DNA of 64,000 nt, taken from NCBI GenBank assembly GCA_964035545.1, contig OZ037770.1:3628662-3692661 (forward strand), given 5' to 3'. The DNA comes from Bugula neritina. Taxonomy: Eukaryota; Animalia; Bryozoa. Numbering within the stretch: position 1 is the stretch's first letter; each line of letters opens with the position of its first letter. Shown here one piece after another: positions 2,111 to 62,192 of this stretch. The position numbers were made by a program, and so were the translations under genes. The notes beneath the pieces were generated by a model. The model was not told the DNA's origin. It saw nothing but the letters and a program-made list of their open reading frames with translations, and ran no database searches.

Positions 2111-2308
2111 CACCTTTGCAACATAATTCAATAATTGCATGGTCAAGCAGAATAAACTACAATTAACAGCAACAACAGTGTAATAGTTGCGTAGAAAAGT
2201 TGTACTGCAAAAAACTAAAAGAATGCAAAATCTATAAATGTGTGCTACTAAGTAAATGCTGAACAGACATCATGAAATAGTGTACGAAATACAAACTATT
2301 AAACTTAC

Positions 2309-3146: not shown

Positions 3147-3270
3147 CTAACCAGAGAAAATAAGTTTTCAACCTTGCATGCACTCAGCTGGTTTTCAATG
3201 TTTGGATCAGTGACATCTTTATAACTGATAGCAGCATTATGTGATAGCTTTAGGAATTGTTACCTTAAAT
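3147..3270 (-). pseudogene. Candidate decayed exon of the transposon gene
   Basis: GTAAGT donor at 3146-3141; open peptide QFLKLSHNAAISYKDVTDPNIENQLSACKVENLFSLV. Confidence 0.3.
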
Positions 3271-7114: not shown

Positions 7115-7199
7115 ATACAACTATATTAGTGCAGTTGGTTCTATTATTAGATTAGCATATCGATTATGACTTTTCGATTGCCACCCTGATACTATGAGT

Positions 7200-11930: not shown

Positions 11931-12595
11931 TATTTGGATCATTGTAAGTATTTCTGTTGTTGTACTGATTGATAAATATTTTTTAGCTTGCATGGATATT
12001 TGCAACGATCAAGATGTCATTTGAACCTGGACTGGAATAAAGATGGCAAATCGAGAAGCTAGCTACAATTATTCTGCAGAAAGAAACTTGGTAAGCAAAA
12101 ATAAGCTGCAGCATTAAGCAGTAAGCAATATGACGATGAACTTTGCTTGATTTTGATTGACCTTAAAATATCTGGTCACCTTTCACCAACGTGGTCCTGC
12201 GCGGGTGGCCGGTGACTTTAAAATGTCTGTTGCGCGTAAAATAAATTTTGTGACAGTCAAAAGTATGCTGATCTTTTTCGTATTTCAGTGCATCGGTGTC
12301 TTAGCTTAAGAGCTGAACCCAACAATTATGATCTAAAGCTGTTTTTTACTAGAAAGTGATTTTACTGTCTTTCTGATTATTCTTGGTTTTTCAGCTTGAT
12401 GAATTGAATAAATGGATTTGATTTCGGGTATTATGTAATGGATGAAAGAAATTTTTCTTAAATTTGTACTGAGCAATTTTTGCTATTGCTATGATGTTTA
12501 GTGATAAAATTGCACCCTTAATAACCCTGAAAACTTTCATTACTAGCATTTGTTTATGTTCATTTTTAGGAAATTAAAATGAAGACACAACTCAC

Positions 12596-13122
12596 CGATG
12601 CTATCTCACTGTGCCTGCATGCAGTTTATCTAAAAAGGTACTCCTATTAGCTGGCTCTTGCCCAATACCTGGTTGTCTCTGTAACTATTTTTTGCTAGCA
12701 GATAAGTTTTTTGAACTTGACATTTTATTGATTTTGAAAGTTATAGTGAGATTTGAACTTGCTAGCATCGTTTTTAAAGACTTGCTGCAGTTTTTATCAA
12801 CATTTTTTAAGTCAATGGTGTTAGTTTGGAAGCTCTCTCACTCCTCTCTCTGTCTCTTTTTCCCACACCTTCCACTCAACCTCTCTCTCTTTCTCTCCCT
12901 CTCTCCCACCCTCCCTCTCTCCCACCCTCTGTCTCTCCCACCTTCTCCCTCTCTCTCCCACTCTCCGTCTCTCCCACCTTCTCTCTCTCCTAACCTTTCT
13001 CTCTTCCCTTTTCCACTATCTCTCTGACTCTCTCCCTTTCTCTCTTCTACCCCATCTCTCTTCCATCCTCTCTCCTAACCTTTCTCTCACACCCCCCCCC
13101 TCTCCCACTCTCTTTCTCTCTC
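12596..13122 (-). pseudogene. Candidate decayed exon of the transposon gene with an E/R/G-rich low-complexity part
   Basis: GTGAGT donor at 12595-12590; nearly open frame ESFQTNTIDLKNVDKNCSKSLK...DKLHAGTVR, preceded by a GA-rich tract. Confidence 0.3.
12833..13122. repeat. Polypyrimidine (CT-rich) tract (copy at 57933-58238)
   Basis: Almost only C and T for ~290 bp. Confidence 0.9.
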
Positions 13123-13599
13123 TAGTTTGCATGGCTTTACCCAATTTTGGTTTATTTTTTTATTTTGTTTCAGAGTATCCAAAAGGAAAGCTAAAATTTA
13201 TTTAATATATATTATACCAACTTGAGCTTTACATATAATATCAAATAAATGCTGTGTTTTGTTAAAACAATGTTTGCAACTTTGTAGTATATTCAAATTC
13301 ATAATTTATTTGTAGAGTCACACAACAAGACACTACTCTGACACACTCACAAGTTGCCACTGATCCAGCAGTATAGATGATTGTTTTCTCTACTGGCTAT
13401 GCTGTCACGCTTTACTGTTGTGGTGTTTGAAACAAACCAATTGTTTGCCTACGCAGACTAGGGTGAGAAAAAAAGTGAGAAATGAAAGCTGTTTTTAATA
13501 CCAACTACACTTAGTTTTTATTGAATGAAAAACAAAGTGAAATCATTAGTTATCCGTTAAATGACTAAATCACTGTTTATAAAGATGAAACACAAATAA

Positions 13600-16000
13600 T
13601 CTTATAATATGCTAATGAAATTTGGCTTTCAAATAGCTTTTTTCTGTATATATTTGTTGAGGAAGTTTATCTTCAACAAAACTTCGTAGCTGTTGAATAT
13701 GTGGAGAGTATTTTATATTGCATAAATTTATAGAGTAAAAGGTTCTCATCAAACTTTTACAACTTAGCTCATCTACGGTTTAAAAGTGTGAGCCACCCTT
13801 CACACTAGAGTTTTATAAAGTTTTAATGAATGTGCAGTATTTTATAAAATATTGTGTGTGTCGTAAATTTAGCTATTTCTACCTTTTCAGTGAGATTGGA
13901 GTAAACACACCTCAAAATTCACATCTGGTATCACATTGATTTATCGCAAGTCAAAGTACACCTACTAACTCGTCCTTCCTTAATACCTGCTTGCTTTTGC
14001 ACTTCTACTCATTTCATATACCTAACATTTCTCTTGCAGATGAATTACATCTTTTAAGTTGTAAAAGCCTTAAATAGCATGAAATTAATGAGGTTTAAAC
14101 CGTGGCCACACTAACTATTGATGCGTTTATTGATGGGTTAAATTACACGAAAATATTGTCTCTTTCTTTTTAGTTTCACCTAAAGTATTACATACTATTG
14201 ATGGAGGCTTTGCTGAAGTTTTTGGGTGATGATTTGTCAATAATTTTCCAGAGAAGATGATGCCACGGTGGCTGGCATCATTATGCAGTTTCCAAATTTC
14301 TTTCGGCTTTGCTCTAGTGAAAATTTTGGAAAACAATCAACAAAAAGGTTTGTACCATAAACGAAGTTATTGTGTGCGTGTTGCCAAAGCATAAAGTGTG
14401 CTGGACATTTTTAGGTTTCTGTTGAGATGCGTTTTTGCTTTTCCTGCATGAAAAAAGTTCCAGTTTCAGTTAATATCACTAGCGGAGTGTCCACCTATAT
14501 TTTAAATCATATTGATGCATAAGTTCTTTTTGTAATATTAAAAGTATAACTTGCTTAATTGCTATTCAATGCCCTTTGAAGTTTCCAACTGTAATTAATT
14601 AGTTGATTTGGCAGCATAGTATCGATGATTGATGAAGGCAGCCGATATAATTATAAGCATAAATATCTATATCTACATGAAGATGTCATTCCCAATGATT
14701 GTTATTTTGAAATCAGCTGATTAAGTTATCACAAACTAAACATTTTGACCAGCGGCTTGCAATGCAACTCGGTGAAATTTCAGACCTAGATGAATTGAAT
14801 TTCTTACTGAAAATTGTGAAGGTATTAAAGTTTAAAGTGAAAGTTTAAAGGGTCATCTCTCTGCGAATTCTAATAGCATGGTGCCAATTAGACTTGAAAA
14901 AATTTCAAGGCACTATAAAGCACTAAGCCCATTCTTACAAGTAGTTTCAAAGTGCACTGGAATTTCAGTTTACTTGTCATTGTATAGAATCCTGATCTAC
15001 ACTATATAGCATTCACTATTGCCTGCTTCTTCTAAGCATCTATAATGTATTAACTACAGTTTGCTTTGAGAAGTGAATTTCTACTTGGTATTTTTTCCTT
15101 ATCGTTCTGTTGTTTGCCAGTAGTCTTAATTTAATGAATTTTCCCTTTTCAAAAGTGGTTGTGACAATCAAAACGCATCATGCAGCCTGCAACTACACAA
15201 TCAGTCAGTAATTTCTTCCATTAAAGTAGCTCTTCTGGTTACCCTTGCTCACCTAAAAGCCTGAGCCTCATTCAAATTGCAAGTTTTTAGAGTTGTTAAT
15301 TTTTCATGCAATCTTTCATTTTTTTCTTTAGGCACAAAATTAGTATTCACTAGACCTAATCTTTCATCTGCATGTATGCCTATTGTTTGTTCATTAAAGA
15401 AAAACCTCTGCTGAATATTGAACTAATAATGAAAATGAATTCCCTAAACTAAAAGTAGCAGTGTGATTTTGGTATTACAATCAGTTGTTAGCATAGAATC
15501 AAGTTATTGACAGGAATTTTCAAATTGAAATGAATGAATTTCATTGTAAGTCAGCAAGATTTAGTCTAAGTAAACATAGCATTACATCATGTTCTTATTT
15601 AACATTGGTAGAAGGCAACATTTATTTTAAGGACTGTTGTAAACTTAAATGTAATTTTAGGTACTTTCCATGTTTGTTATTGTAGATGGTCTTGTTCTTT
15701 GGAATGGATGTGACAACTCCTTGTGTCAAACTTAACTGATTGACTACTGAATCCCAATCATGTTTTGCCAAAAAATGTGAAAATGGAGTGCATGTCTACT
15801 TTATTTGAGAAAATATTAAAACTACTTTTGAAACTTCATCTAGCCAAACAATACAACAGTTTCATTTTATTAAAAAACATCATTTGCCCAAAATGTATTA
15901 TGTAATCGAACAATTTCTAGAAAAAAAGTGCTTTCCTCCAGTTTTGCTAATGAATTACATATTTCATTACATGCTTGTCTTTATAATTTTATTAATTGTT
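13600..16000 (-). pseudogene. Decayed Zisupton/HMGXB3-like (KDZ) transposase region, copy 1
   Basis: Manual minus-strand translation through stops and frameshifts gives, in the expected order: LCSCR (SWIM-like), ILYNDK*TEIP, TLIPSQ, KCLVCD (CxxC), HQYDLK..TPLVIL..GTFFM, EIWKLHNDASHRGIIFSG...ETKKKETI, a SAP-like LRKDELVGVL, and CEG*L. These resemble Zisupton transposase blocks recalled from memory. Boundaries are approximate. Confidence 0.55.
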
Positions 16001-16496
16001 TTTCTGGTGAGTCAATTAAAGTCAATTCAACCTAGAAAAGTCTGAATTTCAGACTTAATTTCAAGCTAGAATATTCACATTTTTAGGTCTGCGTTTGCAA
16101 ACATTGTTGTGTTACTTTACTTTTTATATTTTTTGAAATAAATATTTTTTTAGCTTGTGCCTATTCATGATTAGAATAGTATAATAATATTTAACTTTTC
16201 TTCAATTTTAATAGATGAAAATATTGATCAGTTGGAGTATTCAGTTTAGCTGAATTTTACTTGCTTCTGCGAAAACAATCTTTTGGAGTTGTCTGCCCTC
16301 TCTTTAGGTAATTTTTTGACCTATGGTCAACGCAATAATTATAACTTTTTAAAGATGCTTGTGAACCTAACAATATAGCACAACTATCAAACCACATTAT
16401 TTATTCAATATCTGCATAAAATTTAGCCAATAATCTGCCACCCAATGAGCTTGAAAAGATATTAGAATTCTAGCTCAGTGCTGCCATCAATGTAGA

Positions 16497-16558
16497 TATT
16501 TATAATGATATAAAGCCAAAACTCATTATTTATAATGATATAAAGCTAAAACTCATTA
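16497..16558. repeat. 31-bp tandem duplication (also ~61610-61672)
   Basis: ATTTATAATGATATAAAGCYAAAACTCATT occurs twice in tandem. Confidence 0.85.
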
Positions 16559-17125
16559 TTGCATGAAATTATCTAACCATTCCTGGCGAAGAATCGAGAT
16601 AATAACTCCAAAGTTGGTCAGTTGAAACCACAGCAATAATACTTTAATCCTTATAATTATCAGGTTTAATTTTATACCAAGCCCCAATAAGTACATATCA
16701 CTATGACAACACAGCCTAAGCACCTCCAATGCAAGAAATTTAGTATTGTGGTGCTGCAAATCCTCCAGTTACAAATGACTAGAGCTTTCATGATTATTGG
16801 TCTACCATAATGTTTATTTAGTTTTAAGGACTAGCATAAATGCTATTATATGCGGGAGGTATTTGAAAAGCTTCCAACTCCATCTTCAACTACGGGCTAT
16901 TATAATTATGCCGATAAACGAGATACTACACTCAGACTGCCCTGTTATAGTACTATGATTGGCTACTGCAAAATTTTTGCCGATAGACAACATTTAATTA
17001 TGATGTAATGTATCTCGTATTGGCACATAAGTGTTATGTCTGAGGACGAGATACTGTGAAATTATGCCCTGAGTAAATTAGAAATGACTGCAATTACTGT
17101 TAATCACGTTTTTATAGCATAGGAA

Positions 17126-41858: not shown

Positions 41859-41866
41859 TCTATAAG
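41859..41866. repeat. Left 8-bp target-site duplication TCTATAAG
   Basis: Identical to 62185-62192, immediately followed by the terminal CAG. Confidence 0.88.
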
Positions 41867-44800
41867 CAGTATATATTTTCCTAGAATGTTGTTTAGAGAC
41901 ATAAAAAAACTGCCTATGCACAACATACTTTGCATCTGTTTAGTATCTCGTAATTAGACATAAAAAAATCAAAGCCAATTATAAGGCAAAAGACCATAAT
42001 ACTGTACTATCATTGGATAGTTCTTCATCAATAAACAGGTAGTTGCCAGTGGTGGATATGAACCCCTCCTAGATGTTTCTCGTACTTCTTCCTCAAAAAA
42101 CATTTTCATTAAGCCAAAAAGAAATAACAATACACCTTTTTAGTTGACACTTTTTAATTTCTGATTGATATTTCACCTTATTTCCAATTATAATTAACTT
42201 TTAACCGGCACTTTTCTTTGTAGTAATTCCTACCCTTTAGACTGTGTACTTTGAAATGAGTCTGTTTTACTCGCTACATAAAGTATAGTTGCACTGGCTA
42301 CAGGTTGACACAAAAGCAAGCCTATCTTGATAAAATCAAGCGCAAATGTAGAAACAACCGAGGAGTTTGTTCCTCATAATTAGAAATTGACAAATTATTT
42401 TTAATCCGTTTAAAAGCATCTGGTTAGGGAAGCATATGCCGTGTTCAATTTGTTATTCTAGCATTAACAATAACAGAATGCAATAATTATAAGTTTATGA
42501 AAGTAATTTGTTTTCTTTCTAATTACAAATATAATATTTTAGTATATATTGTAAATTTATAAGGCTTGCATTAGGAATAACGCAGCTAAAACATCATTTT
42601 CCTTAAAGTCTTAAAAATATATAAGTATAACATAATACACTATGCCAATAAACTTATTAAAGTACCAAGCAAGCTTAGCTAGTTTAAGAAAAATTCCACT
42701 AGGTAAATTCCCATTATTTATAGAATGCTTGCTGATATTAGCTTTTGATGGAATTAAAGTAAATTATTATTTATCTTTCTAGCTAAGGATTTCTTGCCGT
42801 AAGTTTTGCTTTTATGCATGGAGAAATGTCGTAACAAACGAGTTAAATTTTTATAGCACATAAAAATGTAATCTATAAGTCGAAGATATTTAAACTTAGC
42901 CATTAACTCATTTTAATTAGAAATGTAGCCTAAATCTAATACAATACAAAATATATACCAGTATATATAATATATTTTTACCATGCTGTTAATTACAGTA
43001 TTTGTAAAACAAATTTTATGCTCATTAATTAAATGCAACAAATATTTATAAAATACTAATAATGTTGAATAAATAAATTCAATAATTCCTTTTCTATTTA
43101 AATGGCTGCATAATTTCTTGCAAGGTTGTATAAAGGAGTTGTGGCCTACAACTTATTATGTGTTCAATTGCCACATATGTCTTAGGAAGAAGAAAACTCC
43201 CCAAAAATTCTTGGTTTGAAAATTCTAGTATAATTAAAATCACTTAATATGTGTCTTTGAAATGCATTTTGCCACTCTGCAAAATTGCAGGAACAAATAT
43301 TGCGTGAAGTAATAAATGATTTATGAAGTAATTAACAAACCAATGTAAAAACTGTTGTTGTATATAGAACACAACATATTGATTTTCTTCAATTTCCACA
43401 TCAAATCTATTATATATTCAATTATATCTAACCAATGCTAATAAACTAAACATGCATGCATACAAATATTTGCATCATATGCAAGTAATATTAGCTAATT
43501 AGCAACTATAGCATTTTTTTCATTATCTTTATTGCTTGCATATGTCTAAGTATTATGAAAATAAGGTTTTTATTTGCAACTTTGCACCACAAATTACATA
43601 AAATCTAAAAACTTGAGTTGTGACAAGCATTAGGGCTACCTATACACAAATAGACCTTCATAAAACTCTCAATGATTTTATTCAACTCATGTATGCAAAA
43701 GTTTTGCATTAAAACAATTCTTCTAAATCACCCTAGAGCAGGAAATTATTACAAAAACAGCTTCTCATATATAATCTTTCTCCAGATTAATTTTTTTTCC
43801 TGTATTTAAACTAACTTAGCAAGTGAAGATTGTGATATCACTCAGGTAATCACATATATATTATTCATAGCTGTAATACTTTAGCAATGAATAGATCATG
43901 TTTAATTTCCACTCTACCTAGCAGTTTTTCAGAATTATAGAGCTATGTATATCGTGAAATTGGAATAGCCTAATAGTTTTACATGTGTTTATAGCTAGAC
44001 AAATTAACTTAAAAAGCTTACAATAATTAGATGATATTTGCATTCTTTTGAAGGTTATGCTGAAGCTACTGCAAAACTGGCCATTAGTTTAGCATAATAT
44101 GCAATGCCATGCAAAAGCATGCCAAACAAGCAATGTTTATTTACCTTACCAGTGCAATTTTATCACCTTAAACACAAAAGCAAGTATAAAATACACATCC
44201 ATATTAGATTAACTGTCAAGTTAAAAAAAGACAACATATATTCATGAGCTGGTTCTGTTTGCACAAGTACAATTTAGACTAGCTTATTATTTAGATTGCC
44301 ACAAAAATATGACGTAAATTATGTCTTTAATCATTATTTTGATATTCACTGGTTGAAGATATTTTTTATATCCTAATATGTAAATATTGTACATAAATCT
44401 TAAAAATTAACTAGGTGAATAAGGAAAACTGCTAATTTTATGAAACTGTTATGTTAATAAAGACAATGGCTATCAACAAATCCCACCAGACCACAAACTA
44501 ATTGTAAATACTAAAGCAATTATATAGTGCTATGTGTTGATCTAGCCTAGTCAATACACCACAAATATGTATTATGACATACCACATTTTAAGTACTGGG
44601 TTACAATCTATTCTAATGGGTATTTGTTTAAACTGTTATATACAGCTTTTTGCACTACCAATATACAAGCCAGTTGTTATTCTGTCACTTTTTATCTACA
44701 TCTCTTTTTAATGCCAGTTACTTGTTAGCTTCAGTACAAACAGCTAAACATTCTACTCTACAGCCAATCTTACTGTTAACTCTTGTTTAACAATATTACA

Positions 44801-46543
44801 AGAATCTAAAAATTTGAGTGTGTTTTAAGTATAATATTCTATCATTATAACTTTTAAATGAAACAATAATATGATAAATGCATTATAACTTTCAGAAAAG
44901 TTTGTTTGCAAAGTATATGTTTTTGGAAAATAGTTTTACAACATTTGCTAGGAGCATTATATTTATTCCTATCTAAAATAATTTTGTTTGAACTGATATG
45001 TTTGTAATCATGTAATCAGAAGTAAAGCATCAGTAAAATGAGTATAAGTAGAAGCTTGACAGCTACATTAGGCATTGCTACATAGTACATAAATATATGG
45101 CCGTATTAAATACTTAGCTGCATTCACAGATAAATGCATGGCTTGGAATTACAATACTATGAATACATTATTTATTTAGCTGGGTAACTATACAATTATG
45201 CCAAAGTGAAAAGCTTTTGGTTATTAATGCCTGAAATGTCTAACAATCTACTTGGGAGACCACCTTGTTGTTACAGAGTGAATGAGTTATTTGTTTGGCA
45301 TTTGGATGATGGCACAAAGAAAGGCTATTTGGTTTGTTACTTGAGACTAGTAGCAAACTGCTACAGTCATAGCATCTTAGAAGATTTTGCATCACTTGCT
45401 AGAATTGTACATTATTTTAATGTAGCTATTGAAATTAATATCTCACTGAAAACACAGTATTGCAAAATCTTAAGCTGTACATAATTATATTATGCATCAA
45501 AAAGTACTTCTGCTACAGGTTTATTTTAAACTAGCACTGCCAAAGTGCCTTGACTCTATTACAGTGTTTACTAGCTAATTTTGTTCTTCTCAATAGTGAA
45601 ATAGATCTATTGCAAGAAATTAATGACTAGATATAACAATAATGATTTTTAGGCAAGACTTTCGCATCTATATTGCTCATCTGCTAGCTTGAAATACCCC
45701 TCTCCTTGGACTAATCTCAGGCTTTTCATTGTTGTTTAAACAGTTTTTAAACTCCTATTTCAATAAATCATTACCAACACTGCCTGCATGTATTAATATT
45801 CATTAGTGCCATCAATGCACTGTGGAGACAGCACCTGATGTTCTGTATATTACATTATAGTACAGAGATACTAAATCCAAAACATCTAGAATAATTGATG
45901 CTTCTACCAGATTTTTAGCACACCTATAATATGTATTCCTGTAGTAAATATTAATAAGATGTTTTAACTGATAGTTTTTATGCCATTATAATAGTTTGAT
46001 ACTATAACTACAACTTGAAACTCTTTAACCAGCACATTGGTTAGTAATATTGCTTCTTGATATTTAATTGCTGGTTCACAAACTATCAATAATAGGGATG
46101 CATATCAAAACTTGACTGCATTCATAATATGATTTTAATGCTAGGTAATGACTAAGCATGTCTGGCTGATATGAGGTGACTATTTTGTACACTGTTTAAC
46201 AACATCAGCTTTTGGGTTCATTTAAAGCATCTGCAAATCTGTATTATACATAATTACCGTTAGGGCCAATTAATTAAATTGTTAACCCTGAAATGCTTTT
46301 TACACTGTAATACTAAGTAGTAAAAGATATGTATATATATATAAACTGATTGTAATTTATACATAACATTGTACATTTAAAAAAAATCACAAAATACATA
46401 ATTTATTAGCTAAATTTCAAGGCGTTTTGTAGGTAGTGGGTTAATGTCAATAAAGTAGAATCCGGGAAGTTGAGTAGCTTTATTCAAGAGGAAGGCTCTC
46501 CAACAGTTCTACCAAAGCCTAAATAACATGTATAAAATAAAGG

Positions 46544-46741
46544 TTATATGCACAATTTTTTTTCCAAAACAGCCTGCAACTGTTTTGCTATTGCATATGC
46601 CCTATGCCATTCATCAAGTAGAACAATTTTAACCAGGATATCTAGAAAAGTTGACACAAGGGCTTTATAAACCATGTAACAGTAAAACTGTGAGTAGAAA
46701 TTAATTGACACTAATGAATAATGCTTTAGGTGCTGAAACAA
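46544..46741 (-). pseudogene. Ulp1/SUMO-protease-like exon remnant, copy 2
   Basis: ORF-track peptide HLKHYSLVSINFYSQFYCY...DEWHRAYAIAKQ; a copy-specific ~50-bp deletion removes the upstream part. Confidence 0.45.
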
Positions 46742-46864
46742 ATCAACAGCATTATATACAATTGGGGCACATACATGAAAACAGCAGCTAGTGTCAATTT
46801 CTTAAGACAGCACTATTTTAGGTATAAATTTAAGAAGTATTAGAAAATGCAAAAATTTACTGCA

Positions 46865-47270
46865 ATTGGTTCATTTTATTTAAGTTAGTACATACTGAAG
46901 ATCTCAAGTTTTTGCTAATGAACATGAGTTTTGGCCCGAAACTAAAAAAATATCAATAAATACACCTAAATAATCAAGGCTCTTTTTAATTTTCTTTGAT
47001 TTCCTATGCTTTTTTTCTAATTACAGCAACTTCTGACTGGGGATCGCCACGGTTAGTTTGTAACAGTAGGCAATCCAAATGAAATGAATAAATAGGAAAA
47101 AACATGAGAAATCATGCAAAATTAAGAAGAATCTTGATTATTTAGGTGTATTTCTTGATGTCTCACTAATTTTAAGCAAAAAGCATTGTTCATTAGCAGC
47201 TAAAATGTAAAAATGGCTAAAAACTGCAGATTTCCAGTGTGTACTAAATTAAATAAAAGGACTCAATCAC
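46865..47270. mobile_element. Fold-back/MITE-like palindrome inside copy 2
   Basis: Duplicate of 1710-2110. Confidence 0.7.
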
Positions 47271-49329
47271 TTTTGCAACATAATTCAATAATTGCATGGT
47301 CAAGCAGAATAAACTACAATTAACAGCAACAACAGTGTAATAGTTGCGTAGAAAAGTTGTACTGCAAAAAACTAAAAGAATGCAAAATCTATAAATGTGT
47401 GCTACCAAGTAAATGCTGAACAGACATCATGAAATAGTGTACGAAATACAAACTATTAAACTTACCTGTTGATCTAATGCAGCCAAAACCTTAAGCTTAG
47501 AGTAGTGGAATGGTGCTGTTCGATGTTGATATGCTACAAGTAGCTAAGATGACTCAAATTCTTGCCTTTAGGAGTAAGAGGCCTCAGCTCAGTTTCAACA
47601 AAACTTCCAATAATCTCAACGGATGCGCTCAATTAGGAGCCACAACAAAGCACACCCATGTCATTTTAGTAAACTCTAAAAAATGAACGGAAATAAAACT
47701 GTTAGAGAGTAAACAGAGAAACATATAGTGATGGGGGAAAAACCTGTCAGCAAAGGTTATATACACTCATAGCCATAACACGAAGAAAAAGATAATGAAT
47801 AACAACCTATTCAAGATGACACAAGAAACCAAACAAATTTCTTTGACTAAAAAATATAATTAAATACTATATTACTTGGCAAAAAATATTTGTTTTGAAC
47901 AACGTATTATTGGGAAGAATTGCCAGTGTCTTAAATTTTGAGATTAAAGTTTCTGCCTTATAGCGGAAATAGAGAGGCAATCAATAGTGTACAAAACATG
48001 TTTTCAGTCATTGGCTGTTGACTAAATTGACAAAGTTAAAGAAAGCTTCCATATCATTATTTATTTTGTTCTCAAGTGTGTGGTTACAGTTTCATGAGTC
48101 AGAAATATAATTATTTGAGATATGAAATCAAATGTAGTCAAAAGAGTGTCATACAATTTAAAATGTAGTAATAGAGCTTTGACAATAATTTCTTCTGCTA
48201 AGTAAAACAGGTACCATTATGTGCTACTTATCTTTTAGAGATGAACATCAAGGATGTTGAAAACAAAATAGTTGTAAATTACAGCAAATACCTTTCTACT
48301 TACCTAACCAGAGAAAATAAGTTTTCAACCTTGCATGCACTCAGCTGGTTTTCAATGTTTGGATCAGTGACATCTTTATAACTGATAGCAGCATTATGTG
48401 ATAGCTTTAGGAATTGTTACCTTAAATCTAAATTATATAGAACAAGAAGTGCAAAAATATGGCATTAGTACTCATTGCACAATACACACTTGCTAGAGTA
48501 GCTAATCTAGCATCACATTAATTTAAGAAAGACAAAATTTTATTACTGTTCACACATGATGAATATTAAAATTTGAATAATTAGACAAATTAACAATGAT
48601 ATTGATGTTAGTTCAAACATTACTAATGGTAAACACCAAAATACTAATAGGAATAGTCATGTTAACATCAATTAGAAAAGTAAAGATAATTTGAAAATGA
48701 GACAGTTTATAGGTCTAACTCTTATAGTTGACAAGCAATTACAGGGCAGTCATATTGATGTAGGCTACCCTCAAAATGTAGCACTTTGAAAATATTAAAA
48801 AGACAGCACATATAAGAACATAATCTTAAAAATAGGCATATGTGACACCTATATTTTGATTAACAAAGAAATCTTCTTTACTTTATTAATCTAGCTCATA
48901 TAATGGTATTCTGTCTTAGTATGTTATTTTAATACTTGAAATCTAATCAGCTACAGAAAAGTACTTCAATTCAAAGGCCTTCATAATTATTATTTAGTTT
49001 GCTATTTAAATAGACAGTAAGGTTGATGAATAAAATAAAAGTTAGTAAAGTAAAAACTAAATAAATTGAGAATAATATCTCCACTCTAAGGTTATAATCA
49101 TTATAAATTAACATTTTAATACTCCTGTTATCCTTAGGTATAGTTGTTAGCAATTTAACTATGAGCTCAAAGCCAAATGTCAGTATCAGCATCCCCATTA
49201 CATTGACTAAGACTGACTTTATAACCCTCAAGCTGTGGCACTCAATTTCTATAAATAGTAACTAATAACAAATATAAAATTATTTATTTGCTGCTGATAG
49301 TGATAATAATAATAATTAAAAATAATAAT

Positions 49330-52218
49330 ATGATCCATTAAAATAGAACTAATAAAGCCAACGACGTTAATGGTATGTCTAACTAAACATGGCATGTCTC
49401 GTCTGGCAGTGGGTATGTGGAGGGCCAGGCAACCTACGGCCGTCAACCCGTTAATGGCACAACTAGAAGAAGATACTCAAGAGAAGACAACAAAGTTGTC
49501 ATGAAATGCTGCTTCAAAAGTACACCCAAATTGAGAGGTTATAGAAAAACAATGTATGAGCTCTGTAGACCCGGATCAAAGAATTATTTAAAAAGAATGT
49601 GCAAACGCTGGAAAACAGAGGAGAGTTTAACATCAGCGAATAGAGACTAGCGGATTAAGCAAGAACTATGAAGAAACACAAGCATTTTATGGAAGAAGAA
49701 CTCCATAAGATTGAAGAAGGAACCTTGCAAGAACTAGGCACATCAACTGGTGAAGAAGATAATGAAGAGCTAAATTTGCAAATAGAGGATGTTATAGTAC
49801 AACATGAGATAGCATATAAATCAGCCATGAGAATTTTAAGAGTACCTAGTTCAGAGGTAGAAAAAGTGTTAGTAGAAAAATTATAAATGAGCATAACAAA
49901 CTATCTAATGATCGACCAACACTAAGAGCCCTTAGGCACATTGAGAGGGTCAAATTACTATAGGCAGTAAAACAGATTAATGATGTGCTAAACTGTGTTG
50001 AGATTATTAATACCATTGAGCTTAATAACACCACCATGGCTTGTGCGAAAAATAGTAACAGAACAAGTGTGTAACAAAAAGGAAAAAGAAAAACTGACAA
50101 TGTACAAGTATGGAAAATACAACTGCAGAAGAAATAAAAAGAAATTAGATCAGACTTAAGTAAAATACCAGAGTGAAAAAGTAGAGCTTACAATGATTCA
50201 TTGAGAAGAATGGTTGAAGAAAAATATAGGATAAAGAACAAAGAGTGTGGTGTAGTGATTGAAAAACTGAAGCAAAACCTGAGAGCTGTAAGCCAGAAGA
50301 TAAACAGATATACAGAATGAGTTGATCAATATAATCAGAACACAATGTTTACAATGATAAGCGCTTTTATCAAGAATTACGAGGAAATGAATACGTACAT
50401 CTAAAGAGGCACCTGACACGAAAATCAAAAGCATTCTGATAAAATATATGGGGTCAGCCAACTAAAAATAATACCAATGCAGAATGACTAAATAAAGTTA
50501 GCAACAAATTGGAGCATATGTAAAGACAAGGAAATTAAATCTTAGAAACGATGCAAACAACTGGAATAGCAATTAATGTCATAAGGTTGATAAGAAAAAG
50601 CATGAAACCTGGAAAACACAACTGACATACCTGGAAGAAAAGATAGGAGAAATAAAGATCAAACTAAGAATTTTCCAAGGAGACTCTACCTCTATCCCTT
50701 TTCTCCAACTACCGATTCGCATGACAGAAGCGGCTCAATGATGCAAATTTCGACGAGACAGAAAACAAACCATCTCCTATATGTGGATGACCTGAAGGTA
50801 AATAGGAAATCAAAGTGGGAACTGGAAGCTTTGGTAAACACTGCCGGGATTTTCACAAGGAATATAGAAATGAAATTTGGATTAAAAAATGTGCCACACT
50901 GGTTATGAGAAAGGGAAAGAAAATTAAGGACACAGGAATCAGTTTGCCTGATGAACAGGTAATCAAAAATCTGGGTGAGAAGCTGTATAAATATCTAGGA
51001 GTTCTTGAGATTGATGGAATACAAATATATGAAATGAAAAATAAGATCAAGGAGTACTACAAACAAATAAGAAAAGTTCTGGATTCAAAACTGAATGGTG
51101 AGAACACAATCAAAGCAATAAACACATGGGCAGTAACAGCAGTGCATTACACAGCTAGAATACTTGACTGAACTGTTTCATGAGCTAAAAAATATAGACT
51201 GAAAGACAAGGAAGCTAATGACAACAAACCGTGCACCCTATCCGAGAGCAGATGTAGGCAGGCTGTATTTTTGCAGAAGGGAAGGCGGTAGAAGAATGTT
51301 GTCAACTGAAAAATGCATAAAGATTGAAAACTGCAGCATGTCAGACTACTTAAATATAACATAGACTGATAGAAACACCACACTGAATACCTTCCTAAAA
51401 GACAGAACAGCGGTAGAACTAAATAATGATAAAGTGATAGAAAGAACTGATGAGTGTAAAGAAAAGCTTCACGTGGTCAATACATCAAAATGGTAGAAGA
51501 CATGAAAGCATTTTCCTGGAACTGGTTGAAGTATGGTTGGCTGAAAAAAGAAACAGAAGGACTGCTGACAGCTGCGCAAAATCAACTATTCACTACTAGA
51601 AATTATAAAGTGGCTAGGATGAGAGAACAGGGTAGCAAGAAGTGTGGAATGTGTAACGCAAGAGACAAAACTTCGATGCACGTATTGAGTGAGTTTGAGA
51701 AGGTAGCAGAAGGAGAATATAAGAAAAAACACAACCTTTTGGCATTGATAATTTCAATAGTAGTTGTGTGAACTTCGTGGGTTTCAGAAAAGTAAGAATT
51801 GGTACGGCCATCAAGCAGAATAAGTACTGGAAAATGATAATGTGAAAACCTTGTAAGATTTTAACATACACACTGACGTAGTCATCAAAGTTAGGAGACC
51901 CGATATATTAGTAGTTGACAAGCATAATGCTGAAACAACGATAATTGATATCACAGTCCCTGTTATTGGAAAACATCAAAAAAGTCATCCCGTTGTAACT
52001 GGAGCCTTTGGAGCTTTATACAAGATTGTAGACTGGCTGACACTACTTGGAGTAGCTGAAAACAAATGCTCATTAATTCAGCAGACACCCTTACTAGGAT
52101 CAGGATAAGCTCACATCCTGAGGAAAGTTCTATCCATTTCAGCCTAGTATAACTAGGCCAATGGTAAAAGGTTACACCAGCTAAAAAACTACGGTCAATC
52201 AACAATAATAATAATAAT
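49330..52218 (+). mobile_element. R4/Dong-clade non-LTR retrotransposon, decayed, nested in copy 2
   Basis: Same element as 4168-7114 (KCATLVMRKGK, YKYLGVLE, LNGENTIKAINTWAV); extra ~70-bp deletion in the RLE at ~51964. Confidence 0.88.
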
Positions 52219-55200
52219 AGTGCAGTTGGTTCTATTATTAGATTAGCATATCGATTATGACTTTTCGATTGCCACCCTGATACTATGAGTAAAATGTACA
52301 AGCATACGTGAAAGTATAGATATGATCATAAGTATAAAAATAGGTATAAGTATAAATATAAATATAGGTACAAGTATAAAACGAATGATTATATTATTAA
52401 TAATATTAGTCAGTGATACCTATAACCGTAATGGTTTTTAGACTTACAGTTATCATTAACATTAGCTGAGTAATATGATTAGTTAAAATAATGGTATTCA
52501 TTATTATATCATAGTTATAAGTTATAACTCTAGTCTCTAAAGAGCAACAGCAAGTGTAATTGGGATATTCATATTAAATTTCATATTCACATAGTGAAAT
52601 GTTTATGTTATGAACTAATTTATTCCTTCAACATTTAACTATAAATATGATTAACACTAACTTTGACCAGCAGTATTACTAAAAGAAGCGTATTACAAAT
52701 ATAAGATAATAAAATTCTAGTAGTAGGACTAATAGTATTACTAGGTCCAGTATTATTCTTGTTATCTTATTCATCATTCATGAGTTATCAAATTTAAAAT
52801 TACTACTTATTAGCATCAGCATATAAAAAGTAAGATCATTAGGAATAATTATCATGAGGTATGATCTATGATTTGCATTATCCATATATAGTTTAATATC
52901 AATATGATATATTATTATTGCTGATAGTCTATGTTATAGTTAAATTTATACTTATCTTTACAGTTACCTATAGTAGCACTTATTAGTTATTTGTGGTAGC
53001 CAAACTAATGTTTAATATTAATAAATTAAACTGAGTATCATAAAAGTGTTACTAAGAATTTTAATTATAATCGTAATGGTGATCATATTACTTTATTATA
53101 ATTATTATATTTTATCATTAATGCTAAACTGAGTTAATGTATATACTTTGAGTTTTACTATTACTCATTATATTTACACTTATAGTAAAACTAAATATGT
53201 AAAAGTTATACTTATACTATTATTATTCGTATTTCATTAGACTTACATCTAAGATCGCAGTCCTATTACTACTACCACTGATACTAGTACTACAACTAGT
53301 ACTAGTACTGCTACTAGTACTAGTACTACTACTACTACTAATAGTACTGTTACTACTACTACTACTAGTACTACTACTAGGTCTACTACTGTACCAGTAC
53401 AACTACAAACTTTGAAAATAACTGCAAGAAAGGTATGACTTACTCTTTTTCTTAGTCTTACTGTGACTCTCAGTCGTAATGTAAAATAAAATTGTAAACT
53501 GTAAAGTTAAACCCAAGGCTGAAATTTATTTAATTAAATTTAGACAATCTGAATCATTGGCTCAATCCTTGAGTTTGACTATTACTATTATTATTAGTCT
53601 TACGATTGTGATTATCATTGGCATTATGCCATTATGATTATCATTATGATTGTAATTGTGGTAATTCTAACATTAATTATAATCATAAATTAAAAGGTAA
53701 TGATTAATGATAATTATTTTCATTTTGTAATCATAATGATAATCATAATGATGTAAATTTTGATGTAAAACCAAAATACTAAAACTAAAAGTAAAGGTTA
53801 TAAAATTAAATGATAAAATATTTTAATGATAATTATTATATTTATTATATTATTATTGAATATATTATTTCATTAGAAAATAGGTTGCAGCTTAGCATGA
53901 TTAAAATTCAGTAAAAATTAGTTTACCAACAGCAAACATGCATGCGTCTTGTCAACATTCAATTCGTAGTGTCATAGCGAAGCCAGATTACTGGTAGTAC
54001 GACTACTAGAACTACTACTACTAGTGATGGATTACAGATCCTTGGCGATTTTAGCTGTGAGTGACCTTCACCTCACATTCTCGTCATGTGCGCGGCATTA
54101 GACTAAGTAGAGGGTATGAAGCACTGAGCTGGAAAAGAAAGAATATATTTTAATTATAGGTAATACTAATAGTAATATAATTTATGGTAATATATAGGTA
54201 ATGTTATTGAGTTCATTGGTATGGAGTATAGACCTATCACTGATAGTATCAGTATCAACTACCACTTACGTACTACTTCAACTTATAACTTACCTTCAAC
54301 TCAAACTCAAACTGAAACTGCTTGGAATCATTTGTCTTTGATCATATTGGCATTGTCATTGTGATTGTAATAACTATTAATATTTTTAGTTCAACATCAA
54401 TGCCGAACATATTGTAATAACTAATAAGATAATCATAAGGCTGATATATTTTGCTAATACTAATACTAATACTAATAGTTATAGTAATAGTTATAGTAAT
54501 TCAGTGTCACTCTCACTCTGGTGGAGTGAGACTCAGACTTAGAGTTAGAGACAGAGTGAGTCCGAGTAAGTCTGAGTGTTGGTAATAGTAATAGTCATAT
54601 AAATTTAAATTATATTTACTTATTTCTAGCAATCACAATGGCAATAGTTATAGTAACTTTCACTTACTCTTAAATCATTGAACCTGAACTAAAAGTAAAA
54701 TTAAGCATTATGATTATCATTATGATTATACCTATGATTTTATTATGTTTAACTTAAAAATCAATATCATGATAATATCATAGTGATAGACATATTATTG
54801 ATAAATGATAATATAAAAGTAATTTGATAAATTATACATTGATTTTGAATTAAGGTGATACGGATACTAGACCGGTACTGAAAGTGATAGTAATACTAAT
54901 AGTAATATGAATTTAAGTTATATTTACTCATTACCGGCAATCACAATGGCAATAGTAACTTAAACTGTAACAGTAATGGTATGGGTATGTTTGAAATTGT
55001 CACTATCAGTATTGCTATGAATCAAAATATAATGCTATCATACCAATAATTTAAAATAGTATTACAAAGCTTCAGTAGCAACTTTTACTTGTACCAGTTT
55101 GGAATTTTGAATTATACATATTCTTAGTTAAAGTCTTCAAGTTTATTGTCAAAATGAACTTGAAATTAAAGACTTAGTAGTAAAAATTAAACTAAGACTG

Positions 55201-58200
55201 ACTGTAAGTGACTAAGATTAAAAATAAGTAATTTTAAATATCGATTTAGTATTTTTCTTACTCTTTGTCTTAAAATTGACTTTTATTTTGCACCTACTCC
55301 TGGTCAATGCTTCTTTTTTCTATTTATATTACTATTGCTATTAGTATAATTGACTTAAATTTAATAATAGATATGATTATATCTTTATAAATGTGATATT
55401 TGATTTTATGAATAGTAATTCGAAAACTCTTTGGTATTATTTATTTTTGATCATTGTAGTTATTATCATTATATTTGTATAATAATTATGATTATCAAAT
55501 TCAATATCGATATTTGTATTATGGTATGGATATCTGCCTCCATCCCATGTTCTGTTTTGCAGTGCCTTTTTACATTCACGTCTAGGTTCACATTGCGATG
55601 GTCATACTGATAGCACTTGGGGACTGTGATGAGCATAATGATTAGCACTAATATTAGGATTATCGTTATTAGGATTTAGAATAATTTAATAAACAAGCAA
55701 CTTAAAACAAATGTTTTTACTAATATACATATTAATTACTAATATAAATATACTACTATAAGTATTATAATTATTATACTTTACAATTCAAAGTAAGATA
55801 ATCATAATACGAACTGGTAAAACTAAATATAAAGTAAATGTAATAATACTAATAGTAGTTATCCATTCCCCTTTGGTTTCACATACTAATAATTGGAAAC
55901 CTCTGTCCTAATATTATTTCTATTAATATTGCTCAAAGTTTGATCCCTATTTAATTTTATAGTTCACTCACCAGCTACATAATTTTATTAAAATACATGT
56001 GGTATTGGTTATAGTACTAGTGAAACTTGAAGTTGAATAGCATGCTTATTACTCACTGCTCTTTGCTTACATTATTAGGGTTACTCTTTAGTCTTAGAGA
56101 TACCCTAACATAAACTTGAAAGCTGGAGGTAGTACTAGTCTAGTGCTGTGTTAATCCTACACTGTTGACTTATCAACACTGTGACTATAATTATGACTCC
56201 TAAGTCAAAGTCATTTTCATATAGTAGTAATCACTATGACAGACTGAAAGTCAGGAAGACTAAATATAATGGTAAAGTGTGTAAGAATAAATCATACTTA
56301 ATCAATTATTTTTAGTTTTGTTACCAGTGTTGGGTCAACTTTCAGAATAAAGAATAAATATAATTATAAAGATAAATGGATAAAAATTCCAATCATGGTT
56401 TAATGTGCCTATTTTAAGCTGTTAATTTAATTACTATAATATAAGTGCTCAAAATACAACTTTTGATTTTCATAATTATGTTTTAATTTAATACAGAGCC
56501 ATAGTATCATATACAGTAGAATCAGTTGTATCTTATTTAATAATGAAGTAACTTATTGGAGCTTTCACAGTTATTAATTATTTACTTGTTAGTCTTTGAA
56601 CTGGGACAATGTTTGAAACTTGAAGTAGAATGAAGTTTGATTTCAGTTACCGCAATGGTATCTGCAGTCACAATAGGAATACGCATATAACTATGTTTAT
56701 ATTTGTGAAAAATATATAGTCAAAACTAGATAAGGTAATAGTAATTATAATTGGTTTCACTTTTAATATATTCCTATAAATTGGAAAATAGACAGAAGCA
56801 TTTAATCATGAAAGTAAACCTAGTGGAAGTAAATCAATTCACTAAGTATAGTAAAATATTTACTATTCAGTAAGTTTATTTACTTTAGTTAATTGTACTT
56901 GATTATTTCTGTCGGTTTTTCAGTTGATTTTTCTACCTTTTGCTATAGCATATCAAACTACCACAAAGTCATGCTTCCGTATTACAATTATAAACATAGT
57001 GTTACTGTGTAATGTTATAGTAATGTAATAGTAATATTTGGATCATTGTAAGTATTTCTGTTGTACTGATTGATAAATATTTTTTAGCTTGCATGGATAT
57101 TTGCAACGATCAAGATGTCATTTGAACCTGGACTGGAATAAAGATGGCAAATCGAGAAGCTAGCTACAATTATTCTGCAGAAAGAAACTTGGTAAGCAAA
57201 AATAAGCTGCAGCATTAAGCAGTAAGCAATATGACGATGAACTTTGCTTGATTTTGATTGACCTTAAAATATCTGGTCACCTTTCACCAACGTGGTCCTG
57301 CGCGGGTGGCGGGTGACCTTAAAATGTCTGTTGCACGTAAAATAAATTTTGTGACAGTCAAAAGTATGCTGATCTTTTTCGTATTTCAGTGCATCGGTGT
57401 CTTAGCTTAAGAGCTGAACCCAACAATTATGATCTAAAGCTGTTTTTTACTAGAAAGTGATTTTACTGTCTTTCTGATTATTCTTGGTTTTTCAGCTTGA
57501 TGAATTGAATAAATGGATTTGATTTCGGGTATTATGTAATGGATGAAAGAAATTTTTCTTAAATTTGTACTGAGCAATTTTTGCTATTGCTATGATGTTT
57601 AGTGATAAAATTGCACCCTTAATAACCCTGAAAACTTTCATTACTAGCATTTGTTTATGTTCATTTTTAGGAAATTAAAATGAAGACACAACTCACCGAT
57701 GCTATCTCACTGTGCCTGCATGCAGTTTATCTAAAAAGGTACTCCTATTAGCTGGCTCTTGCCCAATACCTGGTTGTCTCTGTAACTATTTTTTGCTCGC
57801 AGATGAGTTTTTTGAACTTGACATTTTATTGATTTTGAAAGTTATAGTTAGCTTTGAACTTGCTAGCATCGTTTTTAAAGACTTGCTGCAGTTTTTATCA
57901 ACATTTTTTAAGTCAATGGTGTTAGTTTGGAAGCTCTCTCACTCCTCTCTCTGTCTCTTTCTCCCACACCTTCCACTCAACCTCTCTCTCTTTCTCCCCC
58001 TCTCTCCCACCCTCCCTCTCTCCCACCCTCCCTCTCTCCCACCCTCTGTCTCTCCCACCTTCTCTCTCTCCCACTCTCCGTCTCTCCCACCTTCTCTCTC
58101 TCCTAACCTTTCTCTCTTCCCTTTTCCACTATCTCTCTGACTCTCTCCCTTTCTCTCTTCTACCCCATCTCTCTTCCATCCTCTCTCCTAACCTTTCTCT

Positions 58201-58714
58201 CCCACCCCCCCCCCCTCTCCCACTCTCTTTCTCTCTCTAGTTTGCGTGGCTTTACCCAATTTTGGTTTATTTTTTTATTTTGTCTCAGAGTATCCAAAAG
58301 GAAAGCTAAAATTTATTTAATATGTATTATACCAACTTGAGCTTTACATATAATATCAAATAAATGCTGTGTTTTGTTAAAACAATGTTTGCAACTTTGT
58401 AGTATATTCAAATTCATAATTTATTTGTAGAGTCACACAACAAGACACTACTCTGACACACTCACAAGTTGTCACTGATCCAGCAGTATAGATGATTGTT
58501 TTCTCCACTGGCTATGCTGTCACGCTTTACTGTTGTGGTGTTTGAAACAAACCAATTGTTTGCCTACGCAGATTAGGGTGAGAAAAAAAGTGAGAAATGA
58601 AAGCTGTTTTTAATACCAACTACACTTAGTTTTTATTGAATGAAAAACAAAGTGAAATCATTAGTTATCCGTTAAATGACTAAATCATTGTTTATAAAGA
58701 TGAAACACAAATAA

Positions 58715-61115
58715 TCTTATAATATGCTAATGAAATTTGGCTTTCAAATAGCTTTTTTCTGTATATTTGTTGAGGAAGTTTATCTTCAACAAAACTTCGT
58801 AGCTGTTGAATATGTGGAGAGTATTTTATATTGCATAAATTTATAGAGTAAAAGGTTCTCATCAAACTTTTACAACTTAGCTCATCGACGGTTTAAAGTG
58901 TGAGTCACCCTTCACACTAGAGTTTTATAAAGTTTTAATGAATGTGCAGTATTTTATAAAATATTGTGTGTCTCGTAAATTTAGCTATTTCTACCTTTTC
59001 AGTGAGATTGGAGTAAACACACCTCAAAATTCACATCTGGTATCACATTGATTTATCGCAAGTCAAAGTACACCTACTAACTCTTCCTTCCTTAATACCT
59101 GCTTGCTTTTGCACTTCTACTCATTTCATATACCTAACATTTCTCTTGCAGATGAATTACATCTTTTAAGTTGTAAAAGCCTTAAATAGCATGAAATTAA
59201 TGAGGTTTAAACCTTGGCCACACTAACTATTGATGCGTTTATTGATGGGTTAAATTACACGAAAATATTGTCTCTTTCTTTTTAGTTTCACCTAAAGTAT
59301 TACATACTATTGATGGAGGCTTTGCTGAAGTTCTTGGGTGATGATTTGTCAATAATTTTCCAGAGAAGATGATGCCACGGTGGCTGGCATCATTATGCAG
59401 TTTCCAAATTTCTTTCGGCTTTGCTCTAGTGAAAATGTTGGAAAACAATCAACAAAAAGGTTTGTACCATAAACAAAGTTATTGTGTGCATGTTGCCAAA
59501 GCATAAAGTGTGCTGGACATTTTTAAGTTTCTGTTGAGTTGCGTTTATGCTTTTCCTGCATGAAAAAAGTTCCAGTTTCAGTTAATATCACTAGCGGAGT
59601 GCCCACCTATATTTTAAATCATATTGATGCATAAGTTCTTTTTGTAATATTAAAAGTATAACTTGCTTAATTGCTATTCAATGCCCTTTGAAGTTTCCAA
59701 CTGTAATTAATTAGTTGATTTGGCAGCATAGTATCGATGATTGATGAAGGCAGCCGATATAATTATAAGCATAAATATCTATATCTACATGAAGATGTCA
59801 TTCCCAATGATTGTTATTCTGAAATCAGCTGATTAAGTTATCACAAACTAAACATTTTGACCAGCGGCTTGCAATGCAACTCGGTGAAATTTCAGACCTA
59901 GATAAATTGAATTTCTTACTGAAAATCGTGAAGGTATTAAAGTTTAAAGTGAAAGTTTAAAGGGTCATCTCTCTGCGAATTCTAATAGCATGGTGCCAAT
60001 TAGACTTGAAAAAATTTCAAGGCACTACAAAGCACTAAGCCCATTCTTACAAGTAGTTTCAAAGTGCACTGGAATTTCAGTTTACTTGTCATTGTATAGA
60101 ATCCTGATCTACACTATATAGCATTCACTACTGCCTGCTTCTTCTAAGCATCTATAATGTATTAACTACAGTTTGCTTTGAGAAGTGAATTTCTACTTGG
60201 TATTTTTTCCTTATCGTTCCGTTGTTTGCCAGTAGTCTTAATTTAATGGATTTTCCCTTTTCAAAAGTGGTTGTGACAATCAAAACACATCATGCAGCCT
60301 GCAACTACACAATCCGTCAGTAATTTCTTCCATTAAAGTAGCTCTTCTGGTTACTCTTGCTCACCTAAAAGCCTGAGTCTCATTCAAATTGCAATTTTTT
60401 AGAGTTGTTAGTTTTTCATGCAGTCTTTCATTTTTTTTTTGTTAGGCACAAAATTAGTATTCACTAGACCTAATCTTTCACCTGCATGTATGCCTATTGT
60501 TTGTTCATTAAAGAAAAACCTCTGCTGAATATTGAACTAATAATGAAAATAAATTCCCTAAACTAAAAGTAGCAGTGTAATTTTGGTATTACAATTAGTT
60601 GTTAGCATAGAGTCAAGTTATTGACAGGAATTTTCAAATTGAAATGAATGAATTTCATTGTAAGTCAGCAAGATTTAGTCTAAGTAAACATAGCATTACA
60701 TCGTGTTTTATTTAGCATTTGCAGAAGGCAACATATATTTTAAGGATTATTGTAAACTTAAATGTAATTTTAAGTACTTTCCATGTTTGTTATTGTAGAT
60801 GGTCTTGTTCTTTGGGATGGATGTGACAACTCCTTGTGTCAAGCTTAACTGATTGACTACTGAATCCCAATCATATGTTTTGCCAAAAAATGTGAAAATG
60901 GAGTGCATGTCTACTTTATTTGAGAAAATATTAAAAATACTTTTGAAACTTCATCTAGCCAAACAATACAACAGTTTCATTTCATTAAAAAATATCATTT
61001 GCACAAAAATGTATTATGTAATCGAACAATTTCTAGAAAAAAAGTGCTTTCCTCCAGTTTTGCTAATGAACTACATTTTTCATTATATGCTTGTCTTTAT
61101 AATTTTATTATTTGT
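58715..61115 (-). pseudogene. Decayed Zisupton/HMGXB3-like transposase region, copy 2
   Basis: Copy of 13600-16000 sharing most disablements; includes ORF 59239..59448. Confidence 0.55.
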
Positions 61116-62184
61116 TTTTTCTGGTGAGTCAATTAAAGTCAATTCAACCTAGAAAAGTCTGAATGTCAGACTTAATTTCAAGCTAGAATATTCACATTTT
61201 TAGGTCTGCGTTTGCAAACATTGTTGTGTTACTTTACTTTTTATATTTTTTGAAATAAATATCTTTTTAGCTTGTGCCTATTCATGATTAGAATAGTATA
61301 ATAATATTTAACTTTTCTTCAATTTCAATAGATGAAAATGTTGATCAGTTGGAGTATTCAGTTTAGCTGAATTTTACTTGCTTCTGCGAAAACAATCTTT
61401 TGGAGTTGTCTGCCCTCTCTTTAGGTATTTTTTTAACCTATGGTCAACGCAATAATTATAACTTTTTAAAGATGCTTGTGAACCTAACAATATAGCATAA
61501 CTATCAAACCACATTATTCAATATCTGCATAAAATTTAGCCGATAAGCTGCCACCCAATGAGCTTGAAAAGATATTAGAATTCTAGCTCAGTGCTGCCAT
61601 CAATGTAGATATTTATAATGATATAAAGCCAAAACTCATTATTTATAATGATATAAAGCCAAAACTCATTATTGCATGAAATTATCTAACCATTCCTGAC
61701 AAAGAATCGAGATAATAACTCCAAAGTTGGTCAGTTGAAACCACAGCAATAATACTTTAATCGTTATAATTGTCAGGTTTAATTTTATACCAAGCCCCAA
61801 TAAGTACGTATAACTATGACAACACAGCCTAAGCACCTCCAATGCAAGAAATTTAGTATTGTGGTGCTGCAAATCCTCCAGTTACAAATGAGTAGAGCTT
61901 TCATGATTATTGGTCTACCATAATGTTTATTTAGTTTTAAGGACTAGCATAAATGCTATTATATGCGGGAGGTATTTGAAAAGCTTCCAACTCCATCTTC
62001 AACTACGGGCTATTATAATTATGCCGATAAACGAGATACTACACTCAGACTGCCCTGTTATAGTACTATGATTGGCTACTGCAAAATTTTTGCCGATAGA
62101 CAACATTTAATTATGATGTAATGTATCTCGTATTGGTACATAAGTGTTATGTCTGAGGACGAGTTACTGTGAAATTATGCCCTG

Positions 62185-62192
62185 TCTATAAG
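62185..62192. repeat. Right 8-bp target-site duplication TCTATAAG
   Basis: Begins exactly where homology to copy 1 ends. Confidence 0.88.

Follow-up and report, generated by a model that had tools for sequence, protein, structure and literature searches.

KDZ transposons, the group to which a first-pass annotation made from the sequence alone assigned the giant element of the bryozoan Bugula neritina described here, have published members of 6-11 kb with CA..TG ends and a long, short or absent terminal inverted repeat (TIR) (PMC12730594; 10.1101/2024.08.15.608186). Their target site duplications (TSDs) are of 8 bp in Zisupton, the Dileera-type elements and KDZ1-3 and KDZx1 of Cryptococcus, and of 7 bp in Kyakuja (PMC12730594; 10.1101/2024.08.15.608186). 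Kyakuja ends in CA..TG and has no TIR (PMC12730594), and in the Cryptococcus elements the TIR is variable or absent (10.1101/2024.08.15.608186). The B. neritina element lies at positions 41867-62184 of a 64,000-bp stretch of DNA, hereafter the window, which corresponds to C6:3628662-3692661 of the 216-Mb assembly in which all genome searches were made (GCA_964035545.1, contig OZ037770.1). Two other groups of transposons have to be considered at this locus. hAT elements carry the terminal consensus YARNG and prefer targets of the form nTnnnnAn, and P elements show a palindromic context beyond the TSD, a binding-type motif that lies farther from one end than from the other and a CATG terminus.

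We interpret the element as very probably a member of a non-autonomous, recently active family of class II transposons, which move by cut and paste, number about 80 copies, measure about 20.3 kb each and may belong to KDZ. In the window it is a 20,318-bp insertion bounded by an exact 8-bp TSD, TCTATAAG, with CAG at its start and CTG at its end, and it is accompanied by most of a second copy:

41867-62184, plus strand: full element, copy 1, 20,318 bp, equal to C6:3670528-3690845; both boundaries are common to 83 + 79 genomic ends
41859-41866, no strand: left TSD copy, TCTATAAG
62185-62192, no strand: right TSD copy, TCTATAAG
1-17071, plus strand: 3' 17 kb of copy 2, part of C6:3625308-3645732 (20,425 bp)

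A 38-nt pattern of the left terminus (up to 3 mismatches) was found at 83 genomic sites, 76 of them exact, and the right-terminal pattern at 79, with 0 genomic matches for the reversed-pattern controls of both termini. All 83 left and 79 right termini begin or end at exactly the same bases as the window element, and the similarity of 60 fetched loci to the window starts or stops precisely at 41867 or 62184, so that the boundaries first proposed hold across the genome. The ends pair into 73 copies with a modal length of 20.3-20.6 kb (31 measure 20.0-20.8 kb), which together account for 1.73 Mb, or 0.8% of the assembly. Copy 2 had already been noticed as a sequence about 97-98% identical, with the same terminal base but another flank beyond it, and this is what we find: window 1-17071 aligns to 45227-62184 with a BLAST identity of 97.6-98.1% (1.37% substitutions plus 36 indels), shares the end base and continues into an unrelated flank (AGTAAATT...). 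The left end of copy 2 lies 3,354 bp ahead of the window, at C6:3625308.

The recent mobility proposed in the first-pass annotation is supported. Among 15 pairs checked at both flanks, the two 8-mers are identical in 13, differ at one base in another and are discordant in the last. Insertion was also captured as a filled and an empty site. The copy at C8:1194093-1223145 is nested in another copy and reads ...GTTATTC CTAATGCA, element, CTAATGCA AGCCTTAT..., and the window copy carries the same place uninterrupted, on the reverse strand, as ...GTTATTCCTAATGCAAGCCTTAT...:

42567-42574, minus strand: empty-site equivalent of the nested insertion; C8:1194093-1223145 inserted at the exactly equivalent point, duplicating CTAATGCA

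The burst is recent, since the terminal 1.9-kb segments of the sampled copies lie 0.1-1.3% from their majority consensus, with copy 2 at 2.1%, in a sample of best-scoring loci where older copies are under-represented. Older relatives are found in the flanks at about 90% and 72-78% identity. The discordant pair, L004/L053 (C5:4233651-4257326), has GTATCTTT on one side and AATATACC on the other, and may represent two elements or a rearrangement between copies.

The sites chosen by the family have a clear profile. Over 51 distinct target sites, TSD positions 2-6 are 88-92% A/T, compared with 69% in the flanks, and the context is palindromic, with T at -3 (22/34), a purine at -2 (26/34), A at +1 (17/30) and A at +3 (19/30). 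The preferred site is an AT-rich 8-mer within a palindromic T-R-N[8]N-Y-A, a profile consistent with a transposase that acts as a dimer and makes staggered cuts 8 bp apart. Within the TSD, position 2 favours A; position 7 favours T and is depleted in A (T in 37% at position 2; A in 24% and T in 51% at position 7; 51 sites).

The imperfect 70-bp TIR that had been reported also stood up to a null comparison. The left end and the reverse complement of the right end have 40/70 gap-free matches, which is above every value of a null built from 40,096 internal 70-mers (mean 20.0, standard deviation 3.8, maximum 37). Alignments that include a diverged subfamily extend the similarity in conserved blocks to about position 120, namely CAG, ATA-TTTC, AGACATAA at 31-38, ATAC-TT-CATC at 59-70 and AGCCAATnATA at 107-118. 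The subterminal motifs noted earlier are present as well and are more specific than described, being a 22-nt composite, AGTATCTCGT-N4-AGACATAA, that occurs twice per end in inverted orientation:

41867-41986, plus strand: left degenerate TIR, about 120 bp, with conserved blocks equally distant from both ends
62065-62184, minus strand: right degenerate TIR
41942-41963, plus strand: perfect composite motif, AGTATCTCGT-AATT-AGACATAA, a putative transposase-binding site
41883-41904, plus strand: degenerate motif copy, AGAATGTTGT-TTAG-AGACATAA
62147-62168, minus strand: right composite motif, with a private T at 62164 in the window copy and A in 74 other copies
62019-62040, minus strand: second, degenerate motif copy of the right end, perfect in the diverged subfamily of L084

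The L084 subfamily is 13% diverged from the window family, and its terminal 23 nt are identical. It retains the motif, with a perfect version where the window family has a degenerate one, and vice versa. This retention of the termini, together with the exchange of perfect and degenerate motif positions, argues that termini and motif are functional sequences. The cis signals of the element are the ~120-bp degenerate TIR starting with CAG and the 22-bp composite motif, and insertion proceeds via 8-bp staggered cuts. A transposase supplied in trans would recognise the motif and the termini and would have moved the whole 20 kb. The interior consists of family-specific non-coding DNA, a nested remnant of a long interspersed nuclear element (LINE) and simple repeats, and encodes no detectable transposase.

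The content of the interior bears directly on whether the element could move itself. The element is considered non-autonomous because it is non-coding, and on this point the first-pass annotation was right: no coding capacity was found and the stops in the tested pieces are common to about 82 copies. There is no open reading frame (ORF) above 153 amino acids (aa) in either window copy, nor any above 132 aa in 60 terminal 1.9-kb segments. The interior features are as follows:

57679-58201, plus strand: longest open frame, 153 aa, which enters a CT-rich low-complexity array; family copies are its sole matches
49334-52311, plus strand: nested non-LTR retrotransposon remnant with YVDD reverse-transcriptase pieces, in both window copies and about 75 family copies
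52312-52380, plus strand: tandem-repeat tail after the LINE remnant
53267-54751, no strand: AT-rich, containing several arrays of microsatellites and minisatellites
58695-61096, minus strand: the 'coding remnants' of the first-pass annotation, short orphan ORF pieces with no profile match and no relatives outside the family

The LINE reverse transcriptase is the only recognisable coding relic in the element. A 121-aa piece of it (50806-51168) matches about 75 family copies in the genome search, has diverged paralogues elsewhere in the genome (65-74% identity, open frames of 446-554 aa) and has 119 database homologues, several of them labelled PF00078 (RVT_1). This search is a positive control, as a true gene relic reveals its intact relatives by the same route. 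The stretches that had been read as remnants of a long-dead transposase (minus strand 58.7-61.1 kb, and 46.55-46.80 kb) behaved differently and match the same family only. The pieces at 59352-59522, 59242-59448 and 46547-46801, all on the minus strand, and the longest ORF, 57679-57945 on the plus strand, have matches in family copies and, as the sole other match, in a decayed relative at C5:9.895 Mb. When flagged pieces were compared by HMMER with 1.84 billion representative proteins, the matches were five short ORFs of family relatives, none of them annotated, and one unrelated repeat protein; word-index searches with 60750-60950 (minus strand) and 45188-45481 (plus strand) returned only short family fragments. 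Pfam searches of 128 stop-to-stop ORF pieces of at least 42 aa, and of ten flagged pieces at E <=10, gave only noise.

In the tested pieces the open frames are equally short and the stops are common to about 82 copies; therefore, the stops are older than the burst. The earlier statement that disablements are shared between copies is thus correct, but the coding nature of what is disabled did not find support. In comparisons with relatives of 72-90% identity, the synonymous fractions look neutral and every frame contains stops. Given the family-only matches, the shared stops and these neutral fractions, we cannot confirm from the sequences that the flagged stretches are coding remnants. The diverged relatives L083-L085 were considered as evidence for coding and rejected, as they show no significant synonymous excess. 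The piece at 59352-59522 has a THAP-like look (CPAHF...FPTF) that would suggest a P-type protein, but it has no Pfam match and its relatives lack those cysteines. Scanning the element for Rfam families and for tRNAs gave no match.

Zisupton/KDZ is the leading superfamily candidate for the family, ahead of hAT, though we hold this assignment tentatively and at somewhat less than even chances. In its full form, the proposal is that the element is a dead Zisupton/KDZ derivative with a decayed transposase gene of the SWIM/SAP/C48 type, mobilised by resident intact KDZ elements, and we find it credible while leaning slightly against it. The 8-bp TSD, the CA..TG ends, the weak or absent TIR and the large size (6-11 kb in Cryptococcus) are all compatible with KDZ, the TSD, ends and TIR being compatible with other superfamilies too, and the B. 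neritina genome does contain KDZ genes. Six-frame profile searches of the genome, the matches of which were compared with the 73 copy intervals, gave 20 candidates for KDZ (PF18758). One set comprises four single frames of 451 aa (C4:11721561, C4:11728328, C5:10985459 and C8:6196648) and one more copy, the fifth, that is interrupted by a stop; C5:8.715 Mb is also among the KDZ-bearing loci. The second set is an exon-split gene at five loci (C2:21321661-21322485, C7:12131759-12132583, C8:3609300-3610124, C8:988852-989676 and C5:3329019-3329843), with three consecutive exon matches at each (15 candidates).

All these candidates lie outside the 73 copy intervals. The family has no KDZ or C48 match in any of the 73 copies, even though exon-level KDZ matches are detectable elsewhere, and the five genomic matches to C48 are also outside the copies. 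The KDZ/HMGXB3/C48 profile test was negative, and no CxC, SWIM or C48 remnant was found in the ORF pieces of the element by Pfam. CxC2 and the hAT-like RNase-H domain (PF14372) have no match anywhere in the genome, hence they are uninformative for the family. Beyond the family, neither the representative proteins nor the genome contain homologues of the flagged stretches, and relatives of 82-90% identity show no significant synonymous excess. The family is also twice the size of described KDZ elements, and none of the KDZ-bearing loci open to checking has its termini or its motif. The case for KDZ membership is wholly structural, and every testable homology-based feature fails, so that the family call of the first-pass annotation was not upheld. 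More generally, an 8-bp TSD and CA..TG ends are insufficient to file an element under Zisupton/KDZ.

The first-pass annotation had further expected that an intact partner exists, or existed recently, in the genome. This expectation found no support, as the termini and the motif turned up at no locus outside the family. For filing non-autonomous elements, the Repbase rule asks for agreement with an autonomous member over positions 1-11 with at most one mismatch (PMC4455052). In our searches, a 25-position consensus of the right terminus (up to 2 mismatches) detected only the family's own 79 ends genome-wide. The 22-nt motif (up to 1 mismatch) is found at 165 genomic sites. The ends of the family itself should supply about 161-162 of these, which leaves room for at most about 4 sites outside the family. 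Among the 100 of these sites listed (C1 to C6:12.7 Mb, a range that includes KDZ genes on C4 and C5), 100/100 are family sites. By these pattern searches no other locus has the family termini or motif, including the checked KDZ genes on C4 and C5. We conclude that no element in the assembly beyond the family is likely to have the ends expected for the same transposase specificity, and the family currently looks orphaned.

Some variants within the family were considered in this context. Length classes above the modal one recur (22.5, 25.1, 28.3, 29-30 and 32.4 kb), but the idea that these longer copies are autonomous variants was rejected, since a nested Gypsy element accounts for at least one of them and none has a transposase-domain match. 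The variant left ends L078 and L081 were rejected as partners; their similarity to the family extends over no more than 453 and 117 bp, no long ORF was found beyond, and they are taken as truncated copies for these reasons.

Certain points weigh against our interpretation of the family. Pfam is insensitive on short pieces, and the LINE reverse transcriptase was missed by it too. The central 16 kb was read in two copies, and another copy could in principle hold an intact gene. It is only pattern tests that speak against ends shared with KDZ-bearing loci, and the motif sites were listed individually for 100 of the 165.

That the element is a non-autonomous hAT, mobilised by a transposase of that superfamily, seems unlikely to us, if still worth weighing. 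The family resembles Ds-like elements in its 8-bp TSD, its CAG start and its short imperfect TIR with subterminal repeats of the binding type, and its clustered copies would fit local hopping: for 47% of left ends the next one lies within 100 kb, where uniform placement would predict 7%. The right end, CAGGG, fits YARNG, and the genome contains ORFs of 470-563 aa for hAT transposases. However, the left end, CAGTA, breaks that consensus, the target profile is opposite to nTnnnnAn, and 20 kb is far above the size of typical derivatives. The hAT dimerisation domain (PF05699) has 14 genomic matches and none in any copy of the family, which holds no domain relic. A young resident hAT also starts with CAGGG; its 3' terminus, at L064:2055 in reverse complement, reads CAGGGTTGGGG followed by many AATTACA repeats. 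This end has only five bases in common with the 20-kb family, and none of the resident hAT loci has the family termini beyond these 5 nt or the 22-nt motif. The hAT family in question is represented by three 100%-identical copies, L064-L066 (C1:30462367, C3:28905230 and C5:1593917), with an open frame of 563 aa, and is probably active.

Some features of the family are also reminiscent of P elements, namely the 8-bp TSD, the palindromic target context beyond it and a motif unequally distant from the two ends. The family differs from them in having no relic of a THAP domain or of a TNP-like RNaseH and in its termini, which are unlike CATG. The P-type RNaseH_N profile (PF21787) has four genomic matches, none of them in the family, and THAP has no match in the ORF pieces. 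These P-element/THAP9-type loci are C8:1833960-1834286, C3:21490743, C8:5174678 and C8:6136269, and their best open frame is of 218 aa.

A further reading takes the lack of a partner at face value, so that this would be the most abundant giant family of the genome with no autonomous relative having related ends, and its transposase would be encoded outside elements with matching ends. We regard it as rather improbable. Under it, the enzyme could come from a transposon, KDZ or not, whose ends are unrelated and which would cross-mobilise the family via the 22-bp motif. Other candidates would be a host gene derived by domestication and an undescribed transposase superfamily.

It is very unlikely that the element is instead autonomous, with an intact intron-rich gene invisible to stop-to-stop ORF scans. 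The exon-split KDZ gene of this same genome, which shows only frames of 60-80 aa, illustrates how a gene could be hidden in this way, but the 128 ORF pieces gave no exon-level Pfam signal, every tested piece has homologues in the family only, conservation across copies fits neutral expectation, and a first look at the genome-wide searches gave no KDZ, hAT, P or C48 candidate in the family in spite of about 80 copies. Finally, segmental duplication does account for some copies, as L007 and L008 share a flank, but the reading of the two window copies as duplicated DNA that is not a transposon, with a coincidental flanking 8-mer, is refuted by the 73 copies in unrelated flanks, the 13 perfect 8-bp TSD pairs and the precise filled/empty pair. 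L007 (C7:14880962) and L008 (C7:12251519), of 20,446 and 20,444 bp and with an identical left flank, are a duplication of a segment and not two insertions.

Cut-and-paste elements of 20 kb at about 80 copies are unusual, and the family implies that some transposase in B. neritina can move very long DNA efficiently. What is new is the size of the family together with its apparent lack of a partner, and the sharp ends and the 22-bp motif, conserved between subfamilies, offer an experimental handle on the transposase responsible.

The family is also represented outside this assembly. Relatives of 82-90% identity were found in the older assembly GCA_010799875.2, which we take to be a draft assembly of B. 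neritina, and in a metagenome. Data labelled as metagenomic (L083, from JGI 3300002729, and a 'symbiont metagenome' run) hold host-transposon DNA of the family at 82-95% identity; positions 1-380 of L083 form a near-perfect palindrome that is probably an assembly artefact. Among Logan contigs, the element has a depth tens of times that of its flanks in the run that holds it best, and three other runs contain variants that are mostly 90-95% identical. These runs, which consist of contigs only, yielded neither RNA nor an empty-site allele nor usable joints.

Family interior was found in at least 5 of about 64 flanks examined, which indicates self-nesting. The interior of L084 includes nested transposable elements past the shared 2.5 kb. 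Within it, L084:14707-18530 (GCA_010799875.2, VXIV02001506.1) carries a Polinton/Maverick-like gene set, apparently nested in the diverged copy, with ORFs labelled by eye as an adenain-like protease (160 aa), a capsid-like ORF (444 aa) and a chromodomain integrase (244 aa). Next to the window, 7.4 kb past its end, a third copy lies in the opposite orientation at C6:3700020-3728275; it measures 28.3 kb, and its extra 8 kb coincides with a Gypsy element.

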